This document shows positions 24,603-47,646 of a stretch of DNA of 64,000 bases, piece by piece. Source of the stretch: Haliotis rufescens (Eukaryota); NCBI RefSeq assembly GCF_023055435.1, contig NW_025964334.1, forward strand, positions 21,080,001 to 21,144,000, read 5' to 3'. The notes beneath the pieces are model-generated. The model did no database searches. It had not been told where the DNA came from and saw only the letters and a list, made by a program, of their open reading frames with translations. The position numbers were made by a program, and so were the translations under genes. Within the stretch, counting starts at the first letter, position 1. Every line of letters starts with the position of its first letter.

Positions 24603-24835
24603 GTTTGTTTGTGTAGTTTGTTGTTTAACACCACACTCAGCAATATTCCTGGGCCGCGGTCTGTAAAGAATCGAGTCTGGACAAGACAATCCAGTGATTG
24701 TTATCATGAGCATCGACCACGCAATTGGGATACGATGACATGCATCAGCCAAGTCAGCGAGCCTGACCACCAGATCCCATAGTCACCTCATACAACAAGC
24801 ATAGTCACCCTTTACAGGTTGCTGAAGATCTATTC
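24603..24835 (-). mobile_element. SINE-like family B copy
   Basis: Matches the family B consensus. Confidence 0.75.
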
Positions 24836-24925
24836 AAAAGTACAATCAGTATAGAATGAATAGTGTTGCTGTAGTATACTTCATTTTTCAGGAAAATAAC
24901 AAAAAAAACCGCCAAGTATACGTTT

Positions 24926-25436
24926 CAATCTCATTAAAATCAGATGTTAGTTCTTGCTACCGCTAAACAAAGATCTGAGGACATCCAATTAGGGGTCACG
25001 TCAGAAGGACCTTTCACCCGACCAATCAGAGCGTAGCTTACCAGATCATGAAAGTGACAGTCGGAATGTGATTTCTTATCATGCAACCCCGAAAACTTTT
25101 TACACGGGGTATTCCGAACGATAGTTACGAGGTTAACGACTGAATCCATACAATCTCGACCATCTAGTAGCCATTCGAGAATGTTCTTTTGTTCAGGTTT
25201 CAAATTTTTAATCGAGAATTTGTCAAAATATGTTTCGAAGCGTAGTCGCCAATTTGAAATTAGTGCCGTAAAACACGAGTAAGCTGCCTTCTGACTGGCT
25301 AATGTCGACTTCTCGTCAGTCATTCCATTGGTCGATCAAAGTTCGCGCAAGGTCGGTCTGACATGACCCGTGATGGGATGTCCTCAGATCTTTGTTTAGC
25401 GGTAGCGAGAACTAAGATCTGATTTGAGTGAGATTG
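24926..25436. mobile_element. AcademH-like non-autonomous DNA transposon (511 bp), original insertion
   Basis: About 80-bp imperfect TIRs CAATCTCATTAAAATCAGATGTTAGTTC.../...GATCTGATTTGAGTGAGATTG; 10-bp TSD GTATACGTTT/GTATTCGTTT; RecQ-helicase-like remnant FSIKNLKPEQKNILEWLLDGRD on minus. Confidence 0.8.
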
Positions 25437-25827
25437 GTATTCGTTTCTGCAGACATTCTAACTCTGTGTATTGATTACACATGCTACATTAAAGCATGTC
25501 ATAGAGGGCAAACCTAATATTTGGAAAACTGTACATAAGGTCAAAGGTTGTTAACTTTCAGAAAATACTCAAAATACTGAAGACATGTCATATTTCTTTT
25601 ATTTCAGAGCCATATGGAGTAGAAATTGACAAGAAGTATAAAACACGATGCTCTGTCATTAACCTGAATGTTATGCTTTCTATTAAACTATATGAAATTT
25701 AAGGACCATGGCCTTAGGGTATGGAAATTTGTTTCCTGGTGACATAAGGTCGGTCAATAACCTTCTGTTAAGGTGAGCTTAACATTGTAATTGTATGTAT
25801 ATGTACATCACGATGATCATCCCCACG

Positions 25828-27623
25828 TCACACAATTGCATATTCCGTGGATGAAACCGAATAGACCCTATTAATGTCAACATTAATGTCATGTTTATTG
25901 TACAATCTCGTCATGGAAAGATAAAACTTAAACTTGTTGGCTTGAACGAACTCGCAAGCCATCTTGTTTTCAACCGGCTGAGTGAAAATGACCTCTCCGT
26001 TTTCTGGCACAAAAGAAGCCAGTTTACAAAACAAGGCATGAGCAATTTTGTCACTGTCGGCAAAAAGTGGATACATACGAAAGCCAATATCCGCTGCTCT
26101 CAGTACCCCATATCCACATATCTTTCCATTCTGAACGGCAACAAACGTCTTTGCCTTTTTAAATAAAGCCCAGTTTCTCATATAGGAGGGTCTCGGCAAT
26201 GTATGAATGTCTGCGTCGTATGTAACAACGTCATCAAAATTGACGTCTTCTACTGGGATGATATCAAAATCTCCTTTACTCGCTTCCTTCACGAAATCCG
26301 GATTTACTGGTCCCATGTTATAGTGGAATGTAAACGATGGGATGGTCCATCCAAATTGTTCATAGAACGTGATTCTGTTGGAAAGGGCTGTTCCTCCAAC
26401 GTTGCGATGTTTCATGACATCCATGACGGACCGAAACAGTATCTTTCCTATGCCCTTTCCACGGTATTCTTCTTTGACAACGTTCATTCCCGACGAAGCA
26501 AACGTGTCACTGTGTGACAGAATGCCATTGTGCCCTGAATAAATGAAAGACTACAAAAGTATCAACTTATTACATGCATGAGGGTGAGGGTCTACTGTGT
26601 CTACTGATTTAAGACCCGTGAATATCCGGGGTAGAATCTTCAGCAACCCATGCGTGCCGTAAAATAGCGACTGTACTTGTCGTAAGAGGCAACTAACGGG
26701 ATCGGGTAGTCAGGCTCGCTGACTTGGTTGATGCATCATGTAGCATGTCATCGTATCCTAATTTGATTGTCTGGTCCAGACTCGATTATTTACAGACCGC
26801 CGGCATATAGCTGGAATATTGTCGAGTGCGGCGTAAAACAACAAACCAAACCAAACGTCTCCTAATTGCGTGGATCGATGCTCGTGATGTCAATCACTGG
26901 ATTGTCTGGTCTAGACTCGATTATTTTTCAGACCGCTGTCAAATAGCTGGAATATTGCTGAGTGTGGTGTTAAACAACAGACAACGTGTGCTAATTTGTG
27001 TACTTCCACACTTCATAATTAGCCGAAGGTGAAGTAAAAGTGTCTTTAAGATTAAAAGCCATGTTTGAATGTTGTTTAACGCCACACTTAGATATATTCC
27101 AGCTATATGACGGTGTTTTTTAAGTAATCTACATATTTATAACACGGAACAATTGTGCGATATCAACTACAATGAAAACTTTCGTTAAATCACCAAGTAG
27201 GCAAGTAATGACGAAATTGCTTGGTCGATCTAGAGATCAGACAATATATCAACACTCGTTGATAAAAGTTTAAAGCTTTTCGGCAAGCGTCGGCGTTTTA
27301 AACTTTTACTACTCGTGTTTATATATTCATATCAAAAGACACTCGGGTGAGATTCTCTATTAATGTTTAGTTGACGTTATTTCTATCATTAAACAGATGC
27401 GTTGTTCGCCTACTGAATGTTTCCCCTCTTCAAACACTCTGATCTACAAGTAACATTACTGTTGTGGGGAGTTTGCTGTACCTATAACTTCCCCAGTGGG
27501 CGTGACCACTACCACAAGTCCAGAGGGGTCCGTGTCGAAAATACACTCCAAGTAGTCTTTCTCCATGTTCCACTGGTTGGCCGACGTCAACTCGTACAGG
27601 CTTTGAATGTCCTCACGGCGCAT
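25828..27623 (-). CDS. Two-domain GNAT acetyltransferase (YitH/HolE, Acetyltransf_18-like), copy 1; 5' end possibly defective
   Basis: Exons 27623-27482 and 26534-25828 joined in phase 1 (282 aa from MRREDI); acetyl-CoA motif A VKEEYRGKGIG, FYEQFGW, second domain GYGVLR..PLFADS. Start codon uncertain. Confidence 0.8.
26613..26985 (+). mobile_element. Two family B SINE-like pieces in the GNAT intron (repeated in every array unit)
   Basis: GACCCGTGAATATCCGGG head, GTCGTAAGAGGCAAC hairpin, two GCTGGAATATTG..TAAAC tails. Confidence 0.8.
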
Positions 27624-28416
27624 GCGTCGAACCTCATAGTCAACCCCTTCTCGTACAGTGGAAAACCTTAAGTTGTATTCATTGTATTAAACAGTGATTG
27701 AACTAAGTATCGACGCTGTGTTATCACTGCTACACGTAGTATCAGTACTGGCTACATGAAATATATACTTATGGTCAAACGTTCAGCACAACATGCATGA
27801 AATTAAACATCAATTTCACAGCTTTCTTAATAATTTTTAAATATTTAAGGAAAACAAAAAGCTGTTGGTTATAATTTAAATATGTTGATTTACTGCCACT
27901 TTGGTAAATGTAATCTGTTATGGCGTTAAGATTTGTATATTTATGATGTGAATTTCCATATATTGTTCAGTTTGTCCAGTGGAAATGTCAACAAATGTAC
28001 TTATACATTTTCACATTTCAATCGCAATGACATTACTATTCATTCATAACTTTCCATTTTCACTCCTTTTCGTGAAATGTTTCCTGTCCAGAAAATATCA
28101 TGAATTGAAAAGTAGAACAGTTACGTTGCCTATTTTCTTACCATACGTATATGCACATCCGAACTGGCGCAGTCGATGGTGTGGGGATTTAATTCAGCGG
28201 GTAAGATACTACCTTCATCATCCAGGCCAGTTGCCGTTTACAAACAACAATCGATACAAATAATGGGGAAACATGTTTTGTGGGTGAAGGATGAGAGTGA
28301 GTGAGTGAGTTTGGTTTTACGCCGCTTTTAGCAATATTCCAGCAATATCACCGCGGGGGACACCAGAAATGGGCTTCACACATTGTACCCATGTCGGGAA
28401 TCGAATCCGGGTCTTT

Positions 28417-28927
28417 CAATCTCATTAAAATCAGATGTTAGTTCTTGCTACCGCTAAACAAAGATCTGAGGACATCCAATTAGGGGTCACGTCAGAAGGA
28501 CCTTTCACCCGACCAATCAGAGCGTAGCTTACCAGATCATGAAAGTGACAGTCGGAATGTGATTTCTTATCATGCAACCCCGAAAACTTTTTACACGGGG
28601 TATTCCGAACGATAGTTACGAGGTTAACGACTGAATCCATACAATCTAGACCATCTAGTAGCCATTCGAGAATGTTCTTTTGTTCAGGTTTCAAATTTTT
28701 AATCGAGAATTTGTCAAAATATGTTTCGAAGCGTAGTCGCCAATTTGAAATTAGTGCCGTAAAACACGAGTAAGCTGCCTTCTGACTGGCTAATGTCGAC
28801 TTCTCGTCAGTCATTCCATTGGTCGATCAAAGTTCGCGCAAGGTCGGTCTGACATGACCCGTGATGGGATGTCCTCAGATCTTTGTTTAGCGGTAGCGAG
28901 AACTAAGATCTGATTTGAGTGAGATTG
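28417..28927. mobile_element. AcademH-like element, array copy 2
   Basis: Near-identical to 24926-25436; left TSD replaced by a truncated SINE. Confidence 0.8.
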
Positions 28928-29318
28928 GTATTCGTTTCTGCAGACATTCTAACTCTGTGTATTGATTACACATGCTACATTAAAGCATGTCATAGAGGGC
29001 AAACCTAATATTTGGAAAACTGTACATAAGGTCAAAGGTTGTTAACTTTCAGAAAATACTCAAAATACTGAAGACATGTCATATTTCTTTTATTTCAGAG
29101 CCATATGGAGTAGAAATTGACAAGAAGTATAAAACACGATGCTCTGTCATTAACCTGAATGTTATGCTTTCTATTAAACTATATGAAATTTAAGGACCAT
29201 GGCCTTAGGGTATGGAAATTTGTTTCCTGGTGACATAAGGTCGGTCAATAACCTTCTGTTAAGGTGAGCTTAACATTGTAATTGTATGTATATGTACATC
29301 ACGATGATCATCCCCACG

Positions 29319-31114
29319 TCACACAATTGCATATTCCGTGGATGAAACCGAATAGACCCTATTAATGTCAACATTAATGTCATGTTTATTGTACAATCTC
29401 GTCATGGAAAGATAAAACTTAAACTTGTTGGCTTGAACGAACTCGCAAGCCATCTTGTTTTCAACCGGCTGAGTGAAAATGACCTCTCCGTTTTCTGGCA
29501 CAAAAGAAGCCAGTTTACAAAACAAGGCATGAGCAATTTTGTCACTGTCGGCAAAAAGTGGATACATACGAAAGCCAATATCCGCTGCTCTCAGTACCCC
29601 ATATCCACATATCTTTCCATTCTGAACGGCAACAAACGTCTTTGCCTTTTTAAATAAAGCCCAGTTTCTCATATAGGAGGGTCTCGGCAATGTATGAATG
29701 TCTGCGTCGTATGTAACAACGTCATCAAAATTGACGTCTTCTACTGGGATGATATCAAAATCTCCTTTACTCGCTTCCTTCACGAAATCCGGATTTACTG
29801 GTCCCATGTTATAGTGGAATGTAAACGATGGGATGGTCCATCCAAATTGTTCATAGAACGTGATTCTGTTGGAAAGGGCTGTTCCTCCAACGTTGCGATG
29901 TTTCATGACATCCATGACGGACCGAAACAGTATCTTTCCTATGCCCTTTCCACGGTATTCTTCTTTGACAACGTTCATTCCCGACGAAGCAAACGTGTCA
30001 CTGTGTGACAGAATGCCATTGTGCCCTGAATAAATGAAAGACTACAAAAGTATCAACTTATTACATGCATGAGGGTGAGGGTCTACTGTGTCTACTGATT
30101 TAAGACCCGTGAATATCCGGGGTAGAATCTTCAGCAACCCATGCGTGCCGTAAAATAGCGACTGTACTTGTCGTAAGAGGCAACTAACGGGATCGGGTAG
30201 TCAGGCTCGCTGACTTGGTTGATGCATCATGTAGCATGTCATCGTATCCTAATTTGATTGTCTGGTCCAGACTCGATTATTTACAGACCGCCGGCATATA
30301 GCTGGAATATTGTCGAGTGCGGCGTAAAACAACAAACCAAACCAAACGTCTCCTAATTGCGTGGATCGATGCTCGTGATGTCAATCACTGGATTGTCTGG
30401 TCTAGACTCGATTATTTTTCAGACCGCTGTCAAATAGCTGGAATATTGCTGAGTGTGGTGTTAAACAACAGACAACGTGTGCTAATTTGTGTACTTCCAC
30501 ACTTCATAATTAGCCGAAGGTGAAGTAAAAGTGTCTTTAAGATTAAAAGCCATGTTTGAATGTTGTTTAACGCCACACTTAGATATATTCCAGCTATATG
30601 ACGGTGTTTTTTAAGTAATCTACATATTTATAACACGGAACAATTGTGCGATATCAACTACAATGAAAACTTTCGTTAAATCACCAAGTAGGCAAGTAAT
30701 GACGAAATTGCTTGGTCGATCTAGAGATCAGACAATATATCAACACTCGTTGATAAAAGTTTAAAGCTTTTCGGCAAGCGTCGGCGTTTTAAACTTTTAC
30801 TACTCGTGTTTATATATTCATATCAAAAGACACTCGGGTGAGATTCTCTATTAATGTTTAGTTGACGTTATTTCTATCATTAAACAGATGCGTTGTTCGC
30901 CTACTGAATGTTTCCCCTCTTCAAACACTCTGATCTACAAGTAACATTACTGTTGTGGGGAGTTTGCTGTACCTATAACTTCCCCAGTGGGCGTGACCAC
31001 TACCACAAGTCCAGAGGGGTCCGTGTCGAAAATACACTCCAAGTAGTCTTTCTCCATGTTCCACTGGTTGGCCGACGTCAACTCGTACAGGCTTTGAATG
31101 TCCTCACGGCGCAT
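29319..31114 (-). CDS. GNAT acetyltransferase copy 2
   Basis: Exons 31114-30973 and 30025-29319, same translation as copy 1. Confidence 0.8.
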
Positions 31115-31907
31115 GCGTCGAACCTCATAGTCAACCCCTTCTCGTACAGTGGAAAACCTTAAGTTGTATTCATTGTATTAAACAGTGATTGAACTAAGTA
31201 TCGACGCTGTGTTATCACTGCTACACGTAGTATCAGTACTGGCTACATGAAATATATACTTATGGTCAAACGTTCAGCACAACATGCATGAAATTAAACA
31301 TCAATTTCACAGCTTTCTTAATAATTTTTAAATATTTAAGGAAAACAAAAAGCTGTTGGTTATAATTTAAATATGTTGATTTACTGCCACTTTGGTAAAT
31401 GTAATCTGTTATGGCGTTAAGATTTGTATATTTATGATGTGAATTTCCATATATTGTTCAGTTTGTCCAGTGGAAATGTCAACAAATGTACTTATACATT
31501 TTCACATTTCAATCGCAATGACATTACTATTCATTCATAACTTTCCATTTTCACTCCTTTTCGTGAAATGTTTCCTGTCCAGAAAATATCATGAATTGAA
31601 AAGTAGAACAGTTACGTTGCCTATTTTCTTACCATACGTATATGCACATCCGAACTGGCGCAGTCGATGGTGTGGGGATTTAATTCAGCGGGTAAGATAC
31701 TACCTTCATCATCCAGGCCAGTTGCCGTTTACAAACAACAATCGATACAAATAATGGGGAAACATGTTTTGTGGGTGAAGGATGAGAGTGAGTGAGTGAG
31801 TTTGGTTTTACGCCGCTTTTAGCAATATTCCAGCAATATCACCGCGGGGGACACCAGAAATGGGCTTCACACATTGTACCCATGTCGGGAATCGAATCCG
31901 GGTCTTT

Positions 31908-32418
31908 CAATCTCATTAAAATCAGATGTTAGTTCTTGCTACCGCTAAACAAAGATCTGAGGACATCCAATTAGGGGTCACGTCAGAAGGACCTTTCACC
32001 CGACCAATCAGAGCGTAGCTTACCAGATCATGAAAGTGACAGTCGGAATGTGATTTCTTATCATGCAACCCCGAAAACTTTTTACACGGGGTATTCCGAA
32101 CGATAGTTACGAGGTTAACGACTGAATCCATACAATCTCGACCATCTAGTAGCCATTCGAGAATGTTCTTTTGTTCAGGTTTCAAATTTTTAATCGAGAA
32201 TTTGTCAAAATATGTTTCGAAGCGTAGTCGCCAATTTGAAATTAGTGCCGTAAAACACGAGTAAGCTGCCTTCTGACTGGCTAATGTCGACTTCTCGTCA
32301 GTCATTCCATTGGTCGATCAAAGTTCGCGCAAGGTCGGTCTGACATGACCCGTGATGGGATGTCCTCAGATCTTTGTTTAGCGGTAGCGAGAACTAAGAT
32401 CTGATTTGAGTGAGATTG
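31908..32418. mobile_element. AcademH-like element, array copy 3
   Basis: Same TIRs and internal sequence. Confidence 0.8.
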
Positions 32419-32809
32419 GTATTCGTTTCTGCAGACATTCTAACTCTGTGTATTGATTACACATGCTACATTAAAGCATGTCATAGAGGGCAAACCTAAT
32501 ATTTGGAAAACTGTACATAAGGTCAAAGGTTGTTAACTTTCAGAAAATACTCAAAATACTGAAGACATGTCATATTTCTTTTATTTCAGAGCCATATGGA
32601 GTAGAAATTGACAAGAAGTATAAAACACGATGCTCTGTCATTAACCTGAATGTTATGCTTTCTATTAAACTATATGAAATTTAAGGACCATGGCCTTAGG
32701 GTATGGAAATTTGTTTCCTGGTGACATAAGGTCGGTCAATAACCTTCTGTTAAGGTGAGCTTAACATTGTAATTGTATGTATATGTACATCACGATGATC
32801 ATCCCCACG

Positions 32810-34605
32810 TCACACAATTGCATATTCCGTGGATGAAACCGAATAGACCCTATTAATGTCAACATTAATGTCATGTTTATTGTACAATCTCGTCATGGAA
32901 AGATAAAACTTAAACTTGTTGGCTTGAACGAACTCGCAAGCCATCTTGTTTTCAACCGGCTGAGTGAAAATGACCTCTCCGTTTTCTGGCACAAAAGAAG
33001 CCAGTTTACAAAACAAGGCATGAGCAATTTTGTCACTGTCGGCAAAAAGTGGATACATACGAAAGCCAATATCCGCTGCTCTCAGTACCCCATATCCACA
33101 TATCTTTCCATTCTGAACGGCAACAAACGTCTTTGCCTTTTTAAATAAAGCCCAGTTTCTCATATAGGAGGGTCTCGGCAATGTATGAATGTCTGCGTCG
33201 TATGTAACAACGTCATCAAAATTGACGTCTTCTACTGGGATGATATCAAAATCTCCTTTACTCGCTTCCTTCACGAAATCCGGATTTACTGGTCCCATGT
33301 TATAGTGGAATGTAAACGATGGGATGGTCCATCCAAATTGTTCATAGAACGTGATTCTGTTGGAAAGGGCTGTTCCTCCAACGTTGCGATGTTTCATGAC
33401 ATCCATGACGGACCGAAACAGTATCTTTCCTATGCCCTTTCCACGGTATTCTTCTTTGACAACGTTCATTCCCGACGAAGCAAACGTGTCACTGTGTGAC
33501 AGAATGCCATTGTGCCCTGAATAAATGAAAGACTACAAAAGTATCAACTTATTACATGCATGAGGGTGAGGGTCTACTGTGTCTACTGATTTAAGACCCG
33601 TGAATATCCGGGGTAGAATCTTCAGCAACCCATGCGTGCCGTAAAATAGCGACTGTACTTGTCGTAAGAGGCAACTAACGGGATCGGGTAGTCAGGCTCG
33701 CTGACTTGGTTGATGCATCATGTAGCATGTCATCGTATCCTAATTTGATTGTCTGGTCCAGACTCGATTATTTACAGACCGCCGGCATATAGCTGGAATA
33801 TTGTCGAGTGCGGCGTAAAACAACAAACCAAACCAAACGTCTCCTAATTGCGTGGATCGATGCTCGTGATGTCAATCACTGGATTGTCTGGTCTAGACTC
33901 GATTATTTTTCAGACCGCTGTCAAATAGCTGGAATATTGCTGAGTGTGGTGTTAAACAACAGACAACGTGTGCTAATTTGTGTACTTCCACACTTCATAA
34001 TTAGCCGAAGGTGAAGTAAAAGTGTCTTTAAGATTAAAAGCCATGTTTGAATGTTGTTTAACGCCACACTTAGATATATTCCAGCTATATGACGGTGTTT
34101 TTTAAGTAATCTACATATTTATAACACGGAACAATTGTGCGATATCAACTACAATGAAAACTTTCGTTAAATCACCAAGTAGGCAAGTAATGACGAAATT
34201 GCTTGGTCGATCTAGAGATCAGACAATATATCAACACTCGTTGATAAAAGTTTAAAGCTTTTCGGCAAGCATCGGCGTTTTAAACTTTTACTACTCGTGT
34301 TTATATATTCATATCAAAAGACACTCGGGTGAGATTCTCTATTAATGTTTAGTTGACGTTATTTCTATCATTAAACAGATGCGTTGTTCGCCTACTGAAT
34401 GTTTCCCCTCTTCAAACACTCTGATCTACAAGTAACATTACTGTTGTGGGGAGTTTGCTGTACCTATAACTTCCCCAGTGGGCGTGACCACTACCACAAG
34501 TCCAGAGGGGTCCGTGTCGAAAATACACTCCAAGTAGTCTTTCTCCATGTTCCACTGGTTGGCCGACGTCAACTCGTACAGGCTTTGAATGTCCTCACGG
34601 CGCAT
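32810..34605 (-). CDS. GNAT acetyltransferase copy 3
   Basis: Exons 34605-34464 and 33516-32810. Confidence 0.8.
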
Positions 34606-35398
34606 GCGTCGAACCTCATAGTCAACCCCTTCTCGTACAGTGGAAAACCTTAAGTTGTATTCATTGTATTAAACAGTGATTGAACTAAGTATCGACGCTG
34701 TGTTATCACTGCTACACGTAGTATCAGTACTGGCTACATGAAATATATACTTATGGTCAAACGTTCAGCACAACATGCATGAAATTAAACATCAATTTCA
34801 CAGCTTTCTTAATAATTTTTAAATATTTAAGGAAAACAAAAAGCTGTTGGTTATAATTTAAATATGTTGATTTACTGCCACTTTGGTAAATGTAATCTGT
34901 TATGGCGTTAAGATTTGTATATTTATGATGTGAATTTCCATATATTGTTCAGTTTGTCCAGTGGAAATGTCAACAAATGTACTTATACATTTTCACATTT
35001 CAATCGCAATGACATTACTATTCATTCATAACTTTCCATTTTCACTCCTTTTCGTGAAATGTTTCCTGTCCAGAAAATATCATGAATTGAAAAGTAGAAC
35101 AGTTACGTTGCCTATTTTCTTACCATACGTATATGCACATCCGAACTGGCGCAGTCGATGGTGTGGGGATTTAATTCAGCGGGTAAGATACTACCTTCAT
35201 CATCCAGGCCAGTTGCCGTTTACAAACAACAATCGATACAAATAATGGGGAAACATGTTTTGTGGGTGAAGGATGAGAGTGAGTGAGTGAGTTTGGTTTT
35301 ACGCCGCTTTTAGCAATATTCCAGCAATATCACGGCGGGGGACACCAGAAATGGGCTTCACACATTGTACCCATGTCGGGAATCGAATCCGGGTCTTT

Positions 35399-35909
35399 CA
35401 ATCTCATTAAAATCAGATGTTAGTTCTTGCTACCGCTAAACAAAGATCTGAGGACATCCAATTAGGGGTCACGTCAGAAGGACCTTTCACCCGACCAATC
35501 AGAGCGTAGCTTACCAGATCATGAAAGTGACAGTCGGAATGTGATTTCTTATCATGCAACCCCGAAAACTTTTTACACGGGGTATTCCGAACGATAGTTA
35601 CGAGGTTAACGACTGAATCCATACAATCTCGACCATCTAGTAGCCATTCGAGAATGTTCTTTTGTTCAGGTTTCAAATTTTTAATCGAGAATTTGTCAAA
35701 ATATGTTTCGAAGCGTAGTCGCCAATTTGAAATTAGTGCCGTAAAACACGAGTAAGCTGCCTTCTGACTGGCTAATGTCGACTTCTCGTCAGTCATTCCA
35801 TTGGTCGATCAAAGTTCGCGCAAGGTCGGTCTGACATGACCCGTGATGGGATGTCCTCAGATCTTTGTTTAGCGGTAGCGAGAACTAAGATCTGATTTGA
35901 GTGAGATTG
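35399..35909. mobile_element. AcademH-like element, array copy 4
   Basis: Same TIRs and internal sequence. Confidence 0.8.
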
Positions 35910-36300
35910 GTATTCGTTTCTGCAGACATTCTAACTCTGTGTATTGATTACACATGCTACATTAAAGCATGTCATAGAGGGCAAACCTAATATTTGGAAA
36001 ACTGTACATAAGGTCAAAGGTTGTTAACTTTCAGAAAATACTCAAAATACTGAAGACATGTCATATTTCTTTTATTTCAGAGCCATATGGAGTAGAAATT
36101 GACAAGAAGTATAAAACACGATGCTCTGTCATTAACCTGAATGTTATGCTTTCTATTAAACTATATGAAATTTAAGGACCATGGCCTTAGGGTATGGAAA
36201 TTTGTTTCCTGGTGACATAAGGTCGGTCAATAACCTTCTGTTAAGGTGAGCTTAACATTGTAATTGTATGTATATGTACATCACGATGATCATCCCCACG

Positions 36301-38096
36301 TCACACAATTGCATATTCCGTGGATGAAACCGAATAGACCCTATTAATGTCAACATTAATGTCATGTTTATTGTACAATCTCGTCATGGAAAGATAAAAC
36401 TTAAACTTGTTGGCTTGAACGAACTCGCAAGCCATCTTGTTTTCAACCGGCTGAGTGAAAATGACCTCTCCGTTTTCTGGCACAAAAGAAGCCAGTTTAC
36501 AAAACAAGGCATGAGCAATTTTGTCACTGTCGGCAAAAAGTGGATACATACGAAAGCCAATATCCGCTGCTCTCAGTACCCCATATCCACATATCTTTCC
36601 ATTCTGAACGGCAACAAACGTCTTTGCCTTTTTAAATAAAGCCCAGTTTCTCATATAGGAGGGTCTCGGCAATGTATGAATGTCTGCGTCGTATGTAACA
36701 ACGTCATCAAAATTGACGTCTTCTACTGGGATGATATCAAAATCTCCTTTACTCGCTTCCTTCACGAAATCCGGATTTACTGGTCCCATGTTATAGTGGA
36801 ATGTAAACGATGGGATGGTCCATCCAAATTGTTCATAGAACGTGATTCTGTTGGAAAGGGCTGTTCCTCCAACGTTGCGATGTTTCATGACATCCATGAC
36901 GGACCGAAACAGTATCTTTCCTATGCCCTTTCCACGGTATTCTTCTTTGACAACGTTCATTCCCGACGAAGCAAACGTGTCACTGTGTGACAGAATGCCA
37001 TTGTGCCCTGAATAAATGAAAGACTACAAAAGTATCAACTTATTACATGCATGAGGGTGAGGGTCTACTGTGTCTACTGATTTAAGACCCGTGAATATCC
37101 GGGGTAGAATCTTCAGCAACCCATGCGTGCCGTAAAATAGCGACTGTACTTGTCGTAAGAGGCAACTAACGGGATCGGGTAGTCAGGCTCGCTGACTTGG
37201 TTGATGCATCATGTAGCATGTCATCGTATCCTAATTTGATTGTCTGGTCCAGACTCGATTATTTACAGACCGCCGGCATATAGCTGGAATATTGTCGAGT
37301 GCGGCGTAAAACAACAAACCAAACCAAACGTCTCCTAATTGCGTGGATCGATGCTCGTGATGTCAATCACTGGATTGTCTGGTCTAGACTCGATTATTTT
37401 TCAGACCGCTGTCAAATAGCTGGAATATTGCTGAGTGTGGTGTTAAACAACAGACAACGTGTGCTAATTTGTGTACTTCCACACTTCATAATTAGCCGAA
37501 GGTGAAGTAAAAGTGTCTTTAAGATTAAAAGCCATGTTTGAATGTTGTTTAACGCCACACTTAGATATATTCCAGCTATATGACGGTGTTTTTTAAGTAA
37601 TCTACATATTTATAACACGGAACAATTGTGCGATATCAACTACAATGAAAACTTTCGTTAAATCACCAAGTAGGCAAGTAATGACGAAATTGCTTGGTCG
37701 ATCTAGAGATCAGACAATATATCAACACTCGTTGATAAAAGTTTAAAGCTTTTCGGCAAGCGTCGGCGTTTTAAACTTTTACTACTCGTGTTTATATATT
37801 CATATCAAAAGACACTCGGGTGAGATTCTCTATTAATGTTTAGTTGACGTTATTTCTATCATTAAACAGATGCGTTGTTCGCCTACTGAATGTTTCCCCT
37901 CTTCAAACACTCTGATCTACAAGTAACATTACTGTTGTGGGGAGTTTGCTGTACCTATAACTTCCCCAGTGGGCGTGACCACTACCACAAGTCCAGAGGG
38001 GTCCGTGTCGAAAATACACTCCAAGTAGTCTTTCTCCATGTTCCACTGGTTGGCCGACGTCAACTCGTACAGGCTTTGAATGTCCTCACGGCGCAT
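36301..38096 (-). CDS. GNAT acetyltransferase copy 4
   Basis: Exons 38096-37955 and 37007-36301. Confidence 0.8.
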
Positions 38097-38889
38097 GCGT
38101 CGAACCTCATAGTCAACCCCTTCTCGTACAGTGGAAAACCTTAAGTTGTATTCATTGTATTAAACAGTGATTGAACTAAGTATCGACGCTGTGTTATCAC
38201 TGCTACACGTAGTATCAGTACTGGCTACATGAAATATATACTTATGGTCAAACGTTCAGCACAACATGCATGAAATTAAACATCAATTTCACAGCTTTCT
38301 TAATAATTTTTAAATATTTAAGGAAAACAAAAAGCTGTTGGTTATAATTTAAATATGTTGATTTACTGCCACTTTGGTAAATGTAATCTGTTATGGCGTT
38401 AAGATTTGTATATTTATGATGTGAATTTCCATATATTGTTCAGTTTGTCCAGTGGAAATGTCAACAAATGTACTTATACATTTTCACATTTCAATCGCAA
38501 TGACATTACTATTCATTCATAACTTTCCATTTTCACTCCTTTTCGTGAAATGTTTCCTGTCCAGAAAATATCATGAATTGAAAAGTAGAACAGTTACGTT
38601 GCCTATTTTCTTACCATACGTATATGCACATCCGAACTGGCGCAGTCGATGGTGTGGGGATTTAATTCAGCGGGTAAGATACTACCTTCATCATCCAGGC
38701 CAGTTGCCGTTTACAAACAACAATCGATACAAATAATGGGGAAACATGTTTTGTGGGTGAAGGATGAGAGTGAGTGAGTGAGTTTGGTTTTACGCCGCTT
38801 TTAGCAATATTCCAGCAATATCACGGCGGGGGACACCAGAAATGGGCTTCACACATTGTACCCATGTCGGGAATCGAATCCGGGTCTTT

Positions 38890-39400
38890 CAATCTCATTA
38901 AAATCAGATGTTAGTTCTTGCTACCGCTAAACAAAGATCTGAGGACATCCAATTAGGGGTCACGTCAGAAGGACCTTTCACCCGACCAATCAGAGCGTAG
39001 CTTACCAGATCATGAAAGTGACAGTCGGAATGTGATTTCTTATCATGCAACCCCGAAAACTTTTTACACGGGGTATTCCGAACGATAGTTACGAGGTTAA
39101 CGACTGAATCCATACAATCTCGACCATCTAGTAGCCATTCGAGAATGTTCTTTTGTTCAGGTTTCAAATTTTTAATCGAGAATTTGTCAAAATATGTTTC
39201 GAAGCGTAGTCGCCAATTTGAAATTAGTGCCGTAAAACACGAGTAAGCTGCCTTCTGACTGGCTAATGTCGACTTCTCGTCAGTCATTCCATTGGTCGAT
39301 CAAAGTTCGCGCAAGGTCGGTCTGACATGACCCGTGATGGGATGTCCTCAGATCTTTGTTTAGCGGTAGCGAGAACTAAGATCTGATTTGAGTGAGATTG
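38890..39400. mobile_element. AcademH-like element, array copy 5
   Basis: Same TIRs and internal sequence. Confidence 0.8.
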
Positions 39401-39791
39401 GTATTCGTTTCTGCAGACATTCTAACTCTGTGTATTGATTACACATGCTACATTAAAGCATGTCATAGAGGGCAAACCTAATATTTGGAAAACTGTACAT
39501 AAGGTCAAAGGTTGTTAACTTTCAGAAAATACTCAAAATACTGAAGACATGTCATATTTCTTTTATTTCAGAGCCATATGGAGTAGAAATTGACAAGAAG
39601 TATAAAACACGATGCTCTGTCATTAACCTGAATGTTATGCTTTCTATTAAACTATATGAAATTTAAGGACCATGGCCTTAGGGTATGGAAATTTGTTTCC
39701 TGGTGACATAAGGTCGGTCAATAACCTTCTGTTAAGGTGAGCTTAACATTGTAATTGTATGTATATGTACATCACGATGATCATCCCCACG

Positions 39792-41587
39792 TCACACAAT
39801 TGCATATTCCGTGGATGAAACCGAATAGACCCTATTAATGTCAACATTAATGTCATGTTTATTGTACAATCTCGTCATGGAAAGATAAAACTTAAACTTG
39901 TTGGCTTGAACGAACTCGCAAGCCATCTTGTTTTCAACCGGCTGAGTGAAAATGACCTCTCCGTTTTCTGGCACAAAAGAAGCCAGTTTACAAAACAAGG
40001 CATGAGCAATTTTGTCACTGTCGGCAAAAAGTGGATACATACGAAAGCCAATATCCGCTGCTCTCAGTACCCCATATCCACATATCTTTCCATTCTGAAC
40101 GGCAACAAACGTCTTTGCCTTTTTAAATAAAGCCCAGTTTCTCATATAGGAGGGTCTCGGCAATGTATGAATGTCTGCGTCGTATGTAACAACGTCATCA
40201 AAATTGACGTCTTCTACTGGGATGATATCAAAATCTCCTTTACTCGCTTCCTTCACGAAATCCGGATTTACTGGTCCCATGTTATAGTGGAATGTAAACG
40301 ATGGGATGGTCCATCCAAATTGTTCATAGAACGTGATTCTGTTGGAAAGGGCTGTTCCTCCAACGTTGCGATGTTTCATGACATCCATGACGGACCGAAA
40401 CAGTATCTTTCCTATGCCCTTTCCACGGTATTCTTCTTTGACAACGTTCATTCCCGACGAAGCAAACGTGTCACTGTGTGACAGAATGCCATTGTGCCCT
40501 GAATAAATGAAAGACTACAAAAGTATCAACTTATTACATGCATGAGGGTGAGGGTCTACTGTGTCTACTGATTTAAGACCCGTGAATATCCGGGGTAGAA
40601 TCTTCAGCAACCCATGCGTGCCGTAAAATAGCGACTGTACTTGTCGTAAGAGGCAACTAACGGGATCGGGTAGTCAGGCTCGCTGACTTGGTTGATGCAT
40701 CATGTAGCATGTCATCGTATCCTAATTTGATTGTCTGGTCCAGGCTCGATTATTTACAGACCGCCGGCATATAGCTGGAATATTGTCGAGTGCGGCGTAA
40801 AACAACAAACCAAACCAAACGTCTCCTAATTGCGTGGATCGATGCTCGTGATGTCAATCACTGGATTGTCTGGTCTAGACTCGATTATTTTTCAGACCGC
40901 TGTCAAATAGCTGGAATATTGCTGAGTGTGGTGTTAAACAACAGACAACGTGTGCTAATTTGTGTACTTCCACACTTCATAATTAGCCGAAGGTGAAGTA
41001 AAAGTGTCTTTAAGATTAAAAGCCATGTTTGAATGTTGTTTAACGCCACACTTAGATATATTCCAGCTATATGACGGTGTTTTTTAAGTAATCTACATAT
41101 TTATAACACGGAACAATTGTGCGATATCAACTACAATGAAAACTTTCGTTAAATCACCAAGTAGGCAAGTAATGACGAAATTGCTTGGTCGATCTAGAGA
41201 TCAGACAATATATCAACACTCGTTGATAAAAGTTTAAAGCTTTTCGGCAAGCATCGGCGTTTTAAACTTTTACTACTCGTGTTTATATATTCATATCAAA
41301 AGACACTCGGGTGAGATTCTCTATTAATGTTTAGTTGACGTTATTTCTATCATTAAACAGATGCGTTGTTCGCCTACTGAATGTTTCCCCTCTTCAAACA
41401 CTCTGATCTACAAGTAACATTACTGTTGTGGGGAGTTTGCTGTACCTATAACTTCCCCAGTGGGCGTGACCACTACCACAAGTCCAGAGGGGTCCGTGTC
41501 GAAAATACACTCCAAGTAGTCTTTCTCCATGTTCCACTGGTTGGCCGACGTCAACTCGTACAGGCTTTGAATGTCCTCACGGCGCAT
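39792..41587 (-). CDS. GNAT acetyltransferase copy 5
   Basis: Exons 41587-41446 and 40498-39792. Confidence 0.8.
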
Positions 41588-42380
41588 GCGTCGAACCTCA
41601 TAGTCAACCCCTTCTCGTACAGTGGAAAACCTTAAGTTGTATTCATTGTATTAAACAGTGATTGAACTAAGTATCGACGCTGTGTTATCACTGCTACACG
41701 TAGTATCAGTACTGGCTACATGAAATATATACTTATGGTCAAACGTTCAGCACAACATGCATGAAATTAAACATCAATTTCACAGCTTTCTTAATAATTT
41801 TTAAATATTTAAGGAAAACAAAAAGCTGTTGGTTATAATTTAAATATGTTGATTTACTGCCACTTTGGTAAATGTAATCTGTTATGGCGTTAAGATTTGT
41901 ATATTTATGATGTGAATTTCCATATATTGTTCAGTTTGTCCAGTGGAAATGTCAACAAATGTACTTATACATTTTCACATTTCAATCGCAATGACATTAC
42001 TATTCATTCATAACTTTCCATTTTCACTCCTTTTCGTGAAATGTTTCCTGTCCAGAAAATATCATGAATTGAAAAGTAGAACAGTTACGTTGCCTATTTT
42101 CTTACCATACGTATATGCACATCCGAACTGGCGCAGTCGATGGTGTGGGGATTTAATTCAGCGGGTAAGATACTACCTTCATCATCCAGGCCAGTTGCCG
42201 TTTACAAACAACAATCGATACAAATAATGGGGAAACATGTTTTGTGGGTGAAGGATGAGAGTGAGTGAGTGAGTTTGGTTTTACGCCGCTTTTAGCAATA
42301 TTCCAGCAATATCACGGCGGGGGACACCAGAAATGGGCTTCACACATTGTACCCATGTCGGGAATCGAATCCGGGTCTTT

Positions 42381-42891
42381 CAATCTCATTAAAATCAGAT
42401 GTTAGTTCTTGCTACCGCTAAACAAAGATCTGAGGACATCCAATTAGGGGTCACGTCAGAAGGACCTTTCACCCGACCAATCAGAGCGTAGCTTACCAGA
42501 TCATGAAAGTGACAGTCGGAATGTGATTTCTTATCATGCAACCCCGAAAACTTTTTACACGGGGTATTCCGAACGATAGTTACGAGGTTAACGACTGAAT
42601 CCATACAATCTCGACCATCTAGTAGCCATTCGAGAATGTTCTTTTGTTCAGGTTTCAAATTTTTAATCGAGAATTTGTCAAAATATGTTTCGAAGCGTAG
42701 TCGCCAATTTGAAATTAGTGCCGTAAAACACGAGTAAGCTGCCTTCTGACTGGCTAATGTCGACTTCTCGTCAGTCATTCCATTGGTCGATCAAAGTTCG
42801 CGCAAGGTCGGTCTGACATGACCCGTGATGGGATGTCCTCAGATCTTTGTTTAGCGGTAGCGAGAACTAAGATCTGATTTGAGTGAGATTG
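42381..42891. mobile_element. AcademH-like element, array copy 6
   Basis: Same TIRs and internal sequence. Confidence 0.8.
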
Positions 42892-43282
42892 GTATTCGTT
42901 TCTGCAGACATTCTAACTCTGTGTATTGATTACACATGCTACATTAAAGCATGTCATAGAGGGCAAACCTAATATTTGGAAAACTGTACATAAGGTCAAA
43001 GGTTGTTAACTTTCAGAAAATACTCAAAATACTGAAGACATGTCATATTTCTTTTATTTCAGAGCCATATGGAGTAGAAATTGACAAGAAGTATAAAACA
43101 CGATGCTCTGTCATTAACCTGAATGTTATGCTTTCTATTAAACTATATGAAATTTAAGGACCATGGCCTTAGGGTATGGAAATTTGTTTCCTGGTGACAT
43201 AAGGTCGGTCAATAACCTTCTGTTAAGGTGAGCTTAACATTGTAATTGTATGTATATGTACATCACGATGATCATCCCCACG

Positions 43283-45671
43283 TCACACAATTGCATATTC
43301 CGTGGATGAAACCGAATAGACCCTATTAATGTCAACATTAATGTCATGTTTATTGTACAATCTCGTCATGGAAAGATAAAACTTAAACTTGTTGGCTTGA
43401 ACGAACTCGCAAGCCATCTTGTTTTCAACCGGCTGAGTGAAAATGACCTCTCCGTTTTCTGGCACAAAAGAAGCCAGTTTACAAAACAAGGCATGAGCAA
43501 TTTTGTCACTGTCGGCAAAAAGTGGATACATACGAAAGCCAATATCCGCTGCTCTCAGTACCCCATATCCACATATCTTTCCATTCTGAACGGCAACAAA
43601 CGTCTTTGCCTTTTTAAATAAAGCCCAGTTTCTCATATAGGAGGGTCTCGGCAATGTATGAATGTCGGCGTCGAATGTAACAACGTCATCAAAATTGACG
43701 TCTTCTACTGGGATGATATCAAAATCTCCTGTACTCGCTTCCTTCACGAAATCCGGATTTACTGGTCCCATGTTATAGTGGAATGTAAACGATGGGATTG
43801 TCCATCCAAATTGTTCATAGAACGTGATTCTGTTGGACAGGGCTGTTCCTCCAACGTTGCGATGTTTCATGACATCCATGACGGACCGAAACAGTATCTT
43901 TCCTATGCCCTTTCCACGGTATTCTTCTTTGACAATGTTCATTCCCGACGAAGCAAACGTGTCACTGTGTGACAAAATGCCATTGTGCCCTGAATAAATG
44001 AAAGACTACATATGTATAAACTTATTACATGCATGAGGGTGAGGGTCTACTGTGTCTACTGACTTAAGACCCGTGAATATCCGGGGTAGAATCTTCAGCA
44101 ACCCATGCGTGCCGTAAAATAGCGACTGCACTTTTCGTAAGAGGCAACTAACGGGATCGGGTAGTCAGGCTCGCTGACTTGGTTGATGCATCATGTAGCA
44201 TGTCATCGTATCCTAATTTGATTGTCTGGTCCAGACTCGATTATTTACAGACCGCCGTCATATAGCTGGAATATTGTCGAGTGCGGCGTAAAACAACAAA
44301 CCAAACCAAACGTCCCCTAATTGCGTGGATCGATGCTCGTGATGTCAATCACTGGATTGTCTGGTCTAAACTCGATTATTTTTCAGACCGCCGTCAAATA
44401 GCTGGAATATTGCTGAGTGCGTTGTTAAACAACAGACAACGTGTGCTAATTTGTGTACTTCCACACTTCATAATTAGCCGAAGGTGAAGTAGAAGTGTCT
44501 TTAAGATTAAAAGCCATGTTTGAATGTTGTTTAACGCCACACTCAGACATATTCCAGCTATATGACGGTGTCTTGTAAGTAATTTACATATTTTTTACAC
44601 GGAACAATTGTGCGATATCAACTACAATGAAAACTTTCGTTAAATCACCAAGTAGGCGATGACGAAATTGCTTGGTCGATCTAGAGATCAGACAATATAT
44701 CAACACTCGTTGATAAAAGTTTAAAGCTTTTCGGCAAGCATCGGCGTTTTAAACTTTTACTACTCGTGTTTATATATTCATATCAAAAGACACTCGGGTG
44801 AGATTCTCTATTAATGTTTAGTTGACGTCATTTCTATCATTTAACAGATGCGTTGTTCGCCTACTGAATGTTTCCCCTCTTCAAACACTCTGATCTACAA
44901 GTAACATTACTGTTGTGGGGAGTTTGCTGTACCTATAACTTCCCCAGTGGGCGTGACCACTACCACAAGTCCAGAGGGGTCCGTGTCGAAAATACACTCC
45001 AAGTAGTCTTTCTCCATGTTCCACTGGTTGGCCGACGTCAACTCGTACAGGCTTTGAATGTCCTCACGGCGCATGCGTCGAACCTCATAGTCAACCCCTT
45101 CTCGTACAGTGGAAAACCTTAAATTGTATTCATTGTACTAAACAGTGATTGAACTAAGTATCGACGTTGTGTTATCACTGCTACACGTAGTATCAGTACT
45201 GGCTACATGAAATATATACTTATGGTCAAACGTTCAGCACAACATGCATGAAATTAAACATCCATTACACAGCTTTCTTAATAATTTTTGAATATGTTAG
45301 GTAAACAAAAAGCTGTTGGTTATAATTTAAATATGTTGATTTACTGCCACTTTGGTAAATGTAATCTGTTATGGCGTTAAGATTTGTTTTTTTGATGTGA
45401 ATTTCCATACATTGTTCAGTTTGTCCAGTGGAAATGTCAACAAATTTACTTATACATTTTCACATTTTAATCGTAATGACATTGATAATCATTCATAACT
45501 TTCCATTTTCACTCCTTTTCGTGAAATGTTTCCTGTCCAGAAAATATCATGAATTGAAAAGTAGAACAGTTACGTTGCCTATTTTCTTACCATACGTATA
45601 TGCACATCCGAACTGGCGCAGTCGATGGTGTGGGGATTTAATTCAGCGGGTAAGATACTACCCTTCATCAT
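43283..45671 (-). CDS. GNAT acetyltransferase copy 6 (predicted full-length, about 330 aa)
   Basis: Exons 45671-45591 (MMKGSIL...IRM|GTAAG, less certain), 45137-44933 (after TGTTTAG) and 43989-43283; 993 nt open; differs from copies 1-5 by V>I, K>T and Y>F in the last exon. Confidence 0.8.
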
Positions 45672-45747
45672 CCAGGCCAGTTGCCGTTTACAAACAACAA
45701 TCGATACAAATAATGGGGAAACATGTTTTGTGGGTGAAGGATGAGAG

Positions 45748-45920
45748 TGAATGAGTGAGTGAGTGAGTTTGGTTTTACGCCGCTTTTAGCAATATTCCAG
45801 CAATATCACGGCGGGGGACACCAGAAATGGGCTTCACACATTGTACCCATGTCGGGAATCGAACCCGGGTCTTCGGCGTGTCGAGCGAACGCTTTAACCA
45901 CTAGGCTACCCGACCGCCCC
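45748..45920 (-). mobile_element. tRNA-derived SINE family A, full length (truncated versions end units 1-5)
   Basis: TSD TGAAGGATGAGAG on both sides; A/B boxes. Confidence 0.9.
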
Positions 45921-46029
45921 TGAAGGATGAGAGGGGCCATAAATAAAATATTATTTGTTGATTAAGTTCAGCTTATATAATAAACTGTTTCAAATTCTGC
46001 GACTTGCTTGTAGAAATGGAAACGTGAAG

Positions 46030-46149: not shown

Positions 46150-46996
46150 TCAATAACGAATGTCCTTTTATCGGGGATACATATATAAAAAGGATGTATT
46201 TCTTTATTAAATGTATAACCTGACTAGTAATAGGAATTCAAAATCGTCAACCGTCGAGTATATATTCTGGTACTGGTTGGTACTTGCGGAAACCCTAAGT
46301 TTGGTTTATGGTCCGATATGCGGTTTCATGGTGGCCGAAAGCCAGTTCACGGTAACCTATAACAAAGTTTAAGTAAACAACCAGTTATATTACAGCTTCC
46401 GCCAGGAAGCATATGTTCGAATAGCGAGATAAGATGGGAATGCTAAAAATAGGGACAAATTAATAAAAACATGTCTTGAAAAATCTTCTTGCGTAATACC
46501 TCTGTCCAATGTGCGTAGCAGGATACGAGCAAATAGGCCCGCGTGTGCGGAACGCAGCCAAAGCCAGTTTCTTCAAAATCTGGGCCATCTTCAGCGTGCT
46601 GACACGTCAGTATCTGTCCCTTTCCCAGACCAAGCCTCAGCGCTACGTGTATCAAGAGGTATGCCTGTTGTACAAGCGCGTAGTTCAACTATCTATGTAT
46701 GTTAACTGTATCTAAGCACGACAAAACGAAACGCGGGACATGTTGTGCCTCACGCCGACCCAGGCAGAGTTTAATGGAACAGATGGTCCCGGGATAATTT
46801 TGGGTGGCGATAACACCGCCTTATCTGTGGTTGGCGGAGTGATCGTAATTGGCGACTACTTCGGCTTTAGATAAACACAGATGCCATCTGCCATGAAGTT
46901 GGCAACTGATAATAACCGAGATATGCCTAATCTTGTCTTTGGTTCACGTTATTCATGCAGTTTACAGAGAATTACGCAGTGTCACTGAATGAAATA

Positions 46997-47250
46997 GTGG
47001 TTGGTTGGTTTGTTGTTTAACGCCGCACTCAGCAATATTACAGTTATATGACGGCGGTCTGTAAATAATCGAGTCTGGACCAGACAATCCCGTGATTAAT
47101 ATCATGAGCATCGATCCACGCAATTGGGATCGATGACATGCATCCACCAAGTCAGCGAGCCTGACCACCCGATACCGTTAGTCGCCTTTTACGACAAGCA
47201 TAGTCACCTTTTACGGCAAGCATGGGTTGCTGAAGACCTATTCTACCCCG
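46997..47250 (-). mobile_element. SINE-like family B copy
   Basis: Near-consensus match. Confidence 0.85.
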
Positions 47251-47407: not shown

Positions 47408-47646
47408 GGTTTGTTTGTTGTTGTTTTTTGTTAAACGCGCACTCAGCAATATTCCAGCTATATGATCGCGGTCTGTAAATATCATGACCATCGATCCAGG
47501 CAATTTGGATACGATGACATGCATCAACAAAGTCAGCCAGCCAGACCACCCGATCCCGTTAGTCGCCTCTTGCGACAAGCATAGTCGCCTCTTACGGCAA
47601 GCATGGGTTGCTGAAGACCTATACTTTACCCGGATCTTCACGGGTC
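47408..47646 (-). mobile_element. SINE-like family B copy
   Basis: Ends CCGGATCTTCACGGGTC. Confidence 0.85.

Follow-up and report, generated by a model that had tools for sequence, protein, structure and literature searches.

In this article, I discuss a tandem array in the abalone Haliotis rufescens, contained in a stretch of 64,000 nucleotides (the window; NCBI RefSeq assembly GCF_023055435.1, contig NW_025964334.1, positions 21,080,001 to 21,144,000 of the forward strand, with positions below counted from its first letter unless another contig is named), and what may have given rise to it. The array arose by a recent tandem amplification that lies partly within the acetyltransferase gene LOC124151322 and partly downstream of it, and only copy 6, which lies beside exon 1, makes a complete gene, while copies 1-5 are promoterless, 5'-truncated fragments of exons 2 and 3. 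Each unit begins at the end of a short non-autonomous DNA transposon (a miniature inverted-repeat transposable element, MITE), and the origin that I favor, at about an even chance of being the right one, is an ordinary microhomology-mediated duplication that was then expanded by unequal exchange, with the breakpoint at the transposon end a coincidence.

Six head-to-tail units with a period of 3,491 bp span 24923-45873 (repeat finder, unit alignment), starting at 24923, 28414, 31905, 35396, 38887 and 42378 (24923 + 3491 × k), and the last of them measures 3,496 bp on account of indels. Self-comparison at an offset of 3,491 bp gives a near-perfect match from 24923 to approximately 41100, homology between units stops at 45873 and the window contains no N characters; the array was missed by TRF, given its period limit of 500 bp. 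The six-copy tandem unit at about 24924-45873 that had been proposed in a sequence-only reading preceding this analysis is therefore real at the level of the assembly, and the sequence-level statements of that reading are correct. A unit consists of the MITE, the flank 3' of the gene, exon 3, exon 2 and a portion of intron 1, without exon 1 or the promoter. Copies 1-5 vary at just four sites (unit positions 235, 1858, 2367 and 3439 of the six-unit alignment), divergence within the array copies is below 0.1%, and copy 6 is the same as copies 1-5 at unit positions 1-1289 and diverged from window position 43667 on, its 'B-type' tail (43667-45873) carrying 51 substitutions in 2,196 aligned sites (2.3%) and four indels relative to the others.

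The gene is read from the minus strand, and its beginning was located by laying the Haliotis asinina protein on the window, where the first 34 residues fall at 46588-46484 (minus strand), 600-700 bp past the right-hand end of the array. The coding part of exon 1 occupies 46500-46588, with the ATG at 46588-46586 and a GT donor at 46499-46498 in the phase required by exon 2; since this exon stands outside the repeated unit, the right breakpoint of the array lies within intron 1. On the same placement of the H. asinina protein, two other candidates for exon 1 were rejected, namely an upstream ATG in the 45670 region and a short 'MCIYVW' exon inside the unit. Exon 2 (27482-27666 in copy 1 and 44933-45117 in copy 6, with intact AG and GT borders) and exon 3, the last coding exon with the stop codon (25828-26534 in copy 1 and 43283-43989 in copy 6, with an intact AG acceptor), repeat at +3491 × k on the minus strand, and the AATAAA signal of the 3' untranslated region (UTR), on the same strand at 25598-25603 in copy 1, is present in every copy. 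Joining exon 1 to exons 2 and 3 of copy 6 gives a gene model in which all introns are GT-AG and the translation is identical to RefSeq XP_046379681.2 (326 residues, LOC124151322). Homology searches were made exon by exon. Exon 3 matches the Pfam domains PF18014 (57.5 bits), PF13508 (36.9) and PF00583 (34.2), all above their cut-offs, and the encoded protein is a GNAT acetyltransferase with Acetyltransf_1/7 plus Acetyltransf_18 domains, listed by NCBI in relatives as 'holothin acyltransferase-like'; the nearest relatives of exon 3 are mollusc proteins of 316-333 residues, with orthologues 58-89% identical and that of Haliotis asinina at 89%.

Exons 2-3 of each of copies 1-5 correspond to a 282-residue RefSeq protein that is open from an internal Met, and the protein cluster comprises XP_046379681.2 together with four accessions of one identical 282-residue protein, which are filed under different LOC numbers of this 61.5-Mb scaffold. 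The splice sites of these copies are all intact, and the copies are located downstream of the intact gene, past its AATAAA; they have no promoter, and they could add to the dosage only through read-through transcription or newly gained promoters. Two claims of the sequence-only reading fail at this point, as the description 'transposon plus one host gene' does not fit a unit that holds exons 2 and 3 only, and there is no host gene amplification when five of the six copies have neither exon 1 nor a promoter. The complete gene differs from the truncated copies at three residues (I/V 110, T/K 178 and F/Y 201 in the 326-residue numbering), and comparison with three other Haliotis species indicates that the array type carries the derived state at one of these positions and copy 6 at two. 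The arrangement is like that of partial (5'-truncated) tandem gene duplicates, in which a block from intron 1 past the 3' end is likewise duplicated and promoterless copies come to lie behind the parent gene; unlike such duplicates generally, there are five copies here, with intact splice sites and a frame open from an internal Met. As a separate observation, exon 1 encodes a basic, amphipathic leader of 30 residues (MAQILKKLALAAFRTRG...), which is shared across Haliotis, is missing in the 282-residue models and looks like an organelle-targeting peptide.

The MITE of copy 1 occupies 24926-25436 (plus strand, 511 bp, from CAATCTC to GAGATTG), approximately 150 bp past the poly(A) signal of the gene, and identical elements start at 28417, 31908, 35399, 38890 and 42381. 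The left half of its 10-bp target site duplication (TSD), GTATACGTTT, is present before copy 1 only (24916-24925, plus strand), and the right half, GTATTCGTTT, is found in all six copies (25437-25446 in copy 1, plus strand), such that the first element has both halves and the elements of copies 2-6 have GTATTCGTTT on the right and, on the left, a cut tRNA-derived short interspersed nuclear element (SINE). The repeat unit opens with TTT (24923-24925), the final three bases of GTATACGTTT, 3 bp ahead of the start of the left terminal inverted repeat (TIR) at 24926. Each unit closes with a piece of the SINE ending in GGGTC; in copy 1 this is a truncated fragment with the 3' part only (28298-28413, minus strand), followed by TT (28414-28415), T (28416) and the next TIR, and the same arrangement recurs at all five internal junctions, which read identically as GGGTC-TT-T-CAATCTC. 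A 24-mer over this junction has exactly five occurrences in the 1.33-Gb genome, all within the array. The two parents of the junction share TT, a 2-bp microhomology without any longer homology, and the third T matches the old flank only and not the SINE, so that at least one flank base seems to have been retained at the joint, by which the cut SINE is connected with a position 1-3 bp outside the left TIR. The identity of the five junctions would be explained if one founding junction was multiplied by unequal exchange between the 3.5-kb repeats.

Past copy 6 the SINE runs on uninterrupted, reading GGGTCTTCGG where the internal junctions break off, and there it can be seen in full at 45748-45920 (minus strand) in intron 1, between 13-bp TSDs at 45735-45747 and 45921-45933, with a tRNA-like head and a tail that is a (GAGT)n run. 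The head matches the Rfam tRNA model RF00005 at 45844-45915 (minus strand) with 30.2 bits (gathering score 29), ARAGORN called no tRNA in it, as expected for a decayed head, and the right breakpoint of the array at 45871-45873 falls within this tRNA-like part. What the sequence-only reading had said about the junctions thus stands in full: inspection of all six copies finds both TSD halves at the first element only, the five internal junctions place a cut SINE within 1-3 bp of the left TIR with about 2 bp of microhomology, and the SINE is complete, with its TSD, only after copy 6.

The MITE belongs to a family of thousands of copies, for which a first-look search with DNA gave 5,430 candidates and one with protein 9,714, and clean TSDs of 9 or 10 bp flank approximately 18 of the 24 non-array copies sampled. 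Distances from the consensus are 2.7-5.5% for the 25 best copies of the family (the array MITE, 3.3%), no copy among the best-scoring candidates is more than 95.1% identical to the array MITE, and the terminal 12-30 bp of the latter carry two changes at each end relative to the family consensus. The TIRs are approximately 88 bp long and 89% identical, and the single strand is predicted to fold with -120 kcal/mol (z = -14.6) into a stem whose base lies at the TIR ends, starting from CAATCTC, 1-3 nt from the breakpoint. The sequence-only reading called the element AcademH-like, which is reasonable and makes a plausible label, because of the TSDs of 9-10 bp and of a short stretch that looks like the remnant of a helicase, with a 25-residue match (40% identity, pairwise E = 3e-6) between an internal open reading frame (ORF) and the Q-motif region just before Walker A, in a comparison whose partners were multi-copy RecQ-like ORFs of the same genome. 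The 127-residue ORF of the MITE gave no helicase match in Pfam or PDB sequence searches. Mutator-like elements also have 9-10 bp TSDs and long TIRs, and a Mutator-like origin is an alternative that may still hold. The TSD rule itself is that AcademH transposons make TSDs of 9 or 10 bp (Kojima 2020, cited in PMC10045372), and the family is like AcademH in this, in its TIRs and perhaps in a remnant similar to the first part of a RecQ-type helicase domain; unlike AcademH, it is represented here by a 511-bp non-autonomous derivative only, and no transposase or full helicase with the MITE TIRs was found.

An autonomous partner was similarly not found among the 150 protein matches examined, in which the open frames were all of 166 residues or fewer. 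As a parent, an Academ-like element at C556:26.02 Mb, 4.9 Mb away, was rejected for having no common TIR and no helicase domain, and the multi-copy DEAD/RecQ-like ORFs were rejected as a partner since they have no TIR in common with the MITE and no DNA similarity to it within 3.4 kb. The latter loci (L064-L066 and L069, at C334:25.16 Mb, C594:16.08 Mb, C423:0.78 Mb and C346:2.86 Mb) share a near-identical ORF of approximately 200 residues with a RecQ-type Q-motif, Walker A and a DEAD domain (66-72 bits), truncated after motif II; at L064 the ORF adjoins a retrotransposon-like ORF, and ORFs of this type are probably part of a repeat. Furthermore, a 515-bp element of a different family at 1144-1658 has its terminal 23 bp (CAATCTCATTAAAATCAGAT...) in common with the array MITE, with one mismatch in the 23 terminal bases compared. 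This terminus at 1658 is 23 kb upstream and faces the left end of the MITE, no related terminus in reverse orientation was found nearer than that, and a further CAATCTCATTAAAATCAGAT-type terminus stands approximately 12 kb upstream of the window (L058). Judging by these shared ends, several non-autonomous families seem to use one common transposase.

Now considering that the 21-kb array exceeds the read N50 of 15.7 kb in the xgHalRufe1 assembly, which was built from HiFi reads into hifiasm pseudo-haplotypes at a heterozygosity of 1.37% (PMC9709998), it could be argued that the assembler inflated a duplication of one or two copies and that copy 6 is a haplotype switch, and the abrupt change of copy 6 to the 2.3% diverged type would fit such an artefact. 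The read evidence comes from Logan short-read contigs, whose word depth is explicitly not a copy number. In X4 (2019 study), a sample probably from another animal, the word depth is 141-171 over the unique parts of the unit versus 38-48 over the right flank and 6-13 over the copy-6-type tail, which puts the unit at approximately 3-4 times the flank, while in X2 (2024 study) both tail types occur and the unit, at approximately 9-20 versus 15-17, is at about the depth of the flank, as an artefact would also predict. The SINE-MITE junction is bridged by no short-read contig, both of its sides being high-copy repeats. Set against the artefact are the excess in X4, which extends across all unique unit parts, the four single-nucleotide variants that individualize the copies and the separate annotation of the copies by NCBI, and I consider it very unlikely. 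The depths are suggestive of a real array of variable copy number, with, for example, approximately seven units per diploid genome in X4, and the copy number is probably polymorphic between animals. In the related species X15 the states of both tail types are mixed, so the array-type and copy-6-type tails are old lineages (alleles or old paralogues), between which the coding and non-coding divergence (1.4% versus 2.6%, p = 0.13, not significant) cannot discriminate. The simplest history is that an array of one type was joined to a chromosome of the other, either by a crossover or by an assembly haplotype switch in the identical first 1,289 bp.

One further contig of 1,779 nt, from X14, starts at the first base of exon 3 and covers the 3' UTR as far as 43052; its sequence resumes at 42286 and stops with the final base of exon 2 in the next copy, thereby skipping 765 bp (42287-43051) that comprise the MITE with 94 bp on its left and 160 bp on its right, at a joint with 1 nt of overlap; both halves are array-type. 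A GT-AG intron can be dismissed on either strand. My guess is that the X14 run is RNA, and the ends of the contig at exon borders suggest spliced RNA and read-through transcription between copies. The 765-bp skip may represent a variant of the junction with a deletion in the genome.

Under the microhomology-mediated origin that I favor, a single non-homologous joining with 2-3 bp of microhomology would have founded the array, through end-joining between sister chromatids or homologues or through a replicative template switch, by linking the point in the intron-1 SINE to the point 1-3 bp outside the left end of the old MITE to give a direct duplication of 3,491 bp, and later unequal exchange between the 3.5-kb repeats would have raised this to six copies. 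The array resembles the products of microhomology-mediated tandem duplication (end-joining, fork stalling and template switching (FoSTeS) or microhomology-mediated break-induced replication (MMBIR)) followed by unequal crossing-over, both in the 2-3 bp of microhomology with no longer homology at the founding joint and in the identical later junctions, near-identical copies and seemingly variable copy number. Nothing was seen to suggest that a transposase was active when the duplication arose, judged indirectly from the best-scoring family copies only, which are 2.7-5.5% from their consensus versus less than 0.1% within the array. In addition, the only other tandem array found with the MITE family, at C112:23582363-23594636 (L054-L057; approximately 3.25 units of about 3.6 kb, 97.7-98.8% identical), has its MITE inside the unit, at least 780 bp from the unit boundary and not at the junction; the first MITE copy of that array is split by an insertion of approximately 550 bp. 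Several points weigh against a mere coincidence of breakpoint and transposon end. End-joining, FoSTeS and MMBIR predict no breakpoint at such an end, and the chance for a randomly placed breakpoint to lie no more than 3 bp outside a repeat terminus is approximately 1% (approximately 1.5-3% for two breakpoints), on the assumption of some 8-10 repeat termini per 3.5 kb, as judged from repeat blocks. The joint could lie exactly at the TIR end, though only with a T at the CpG at 45874 in the lost array-type SINE allele, the MITE could be a break-prone site, judging from the X14 contig, and the array appears to match a signature that has been published for transposon-made duplications in maize. Balancing all of this, I would put coincidence, rather than cause, at about even.

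The maize signature is an argument for the rival in which an AcademH-like transposase cut the left end of the MITE during or after replication and the SINE of the sister chromatid received this end to give the first duplication, either by reversed-ends or one-ended alternative transposition or by end-joining of the cut end, with unequal exchange afterwards. Reversed-ends transposition of Ac/Ds and other hAT elements produces tandem direct duplications in maize (Zhang, Zuo, Peterson 2013, PMC3744419), in which, according to that paper, the repeat starts at the transposable element (TE), and two TSDs flank the first TE but one the next, a pattern said there not to be predicted by other mechanisms. 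Likewise, the repeat in the abalone begins at a transposon, the first element has two TSD halves, a host segment is duplicated together with the element, and the next element is bordered by the common TSD at one end and by unrelated DNA at the other. The clean 9-10 bp TSDs indicate that the family moved by cut-and-paste transposition, the 515-bp element with its right end facing the left end of the MITE would offer the geometry for reversed-ends transposition, and the X14 contig without the MITE and its flanks could be an excision with resection. However, the genomic cases of maize are limited to two copies each, with a TE joint that is precise, as opposed to six copies here and a joint that seemingly includes 1-3 flank bases, of which TT is shared with the SINE and one T appears to come from the flank, so that as read it is not a precise strand transfer; the maize elements are hAT, with TSDs of 8 bp in a plant, versus 9-10 bp in an animal host; and neither the reciprocal deletion nor the target TSD of the maize system is visible in the abalone case. 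The youngest family members sampled are 2.7% from the consensus as against the less than 0.1% within the array, the array MITE has mutated termini, the helicase loci and the Academ-like element described above share no TIR with it, and the C112 array does not start at a TIR. I therefore regard the transposase route as unlikely. A second rival dispenses with transposase: the 88-bp inverted arms of the MITE would form a hairpin or cruciform based at the TIR end, where a stalled fork or a nuclease cut gave the end that was joined to the SINE. The predicted fold, with its stem starting 1-3 nt off the breakpoint, is consistent with this, the microhomology joint fits break repair or template switch, and long inverted repeats are often lost together with their flanks, as the MITE is in the X14 contig. 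Arms that are 89% matched and approximately 335 bp apart, as they are here, have a weakly fragile geometry in model systems, though, the genome has approximately 5,000-10,000 such MITEs with no evidence of them marking duplications, and the C112 array is unbroken at its MITE, which leaves breakage at a hairpin a rather improbable origin. Returning to the sequence-only reading, the anatomy it described for a transposon-end-driven duplication, with the repeat starting at the TE and only the first TE having both TSDs, was upheld, while the causation was not, as the causal role of the TIR comes down to a single coincidence because the family shows no young copies, the joint seems to keep a flank base, no autonomous partner was found and the C112 MITE is internal. 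A causal role of the transposon is unproven, and somewhat less probable than its absence.

These observations correct an annotation, since the 'six-copy gene' is one complete acetyltransferase gene plus five copies of exons 2-3 that lack a promoter and appear in RefSeq as individual genes for a 282-residue protein. The apparent variation in copy number between animals matters if the locus is used as a marker or when its expression is read. If the transposon end did cause the duplication, it would provide an animal example of a mechanism documented so far mainly in maize and a route for decayed MITEs to keep reshaping genes. The furthest-reaching possibility, to which I assign a low probability, is that an AcademH-like transposase still acts on old abalone MITE ends and that its cuts seed tandem duplications of the adjoining host DNA; if true, this would be the first animal counterpart of the alternative-transposition duplications of maize, and the 765-bp MITE-removing joint of X14 would have come from excision with resection at this very site.

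To the right of the array, two tandem duplets of 22 bp with a near-same unit stand 380 bp apart, at 47179-47223 and 47560-47604, and the motif is also found to the left of the array (approximately 24780-24810) and, inverted, in intron 2, so the duplets are pieces of another repeat family.

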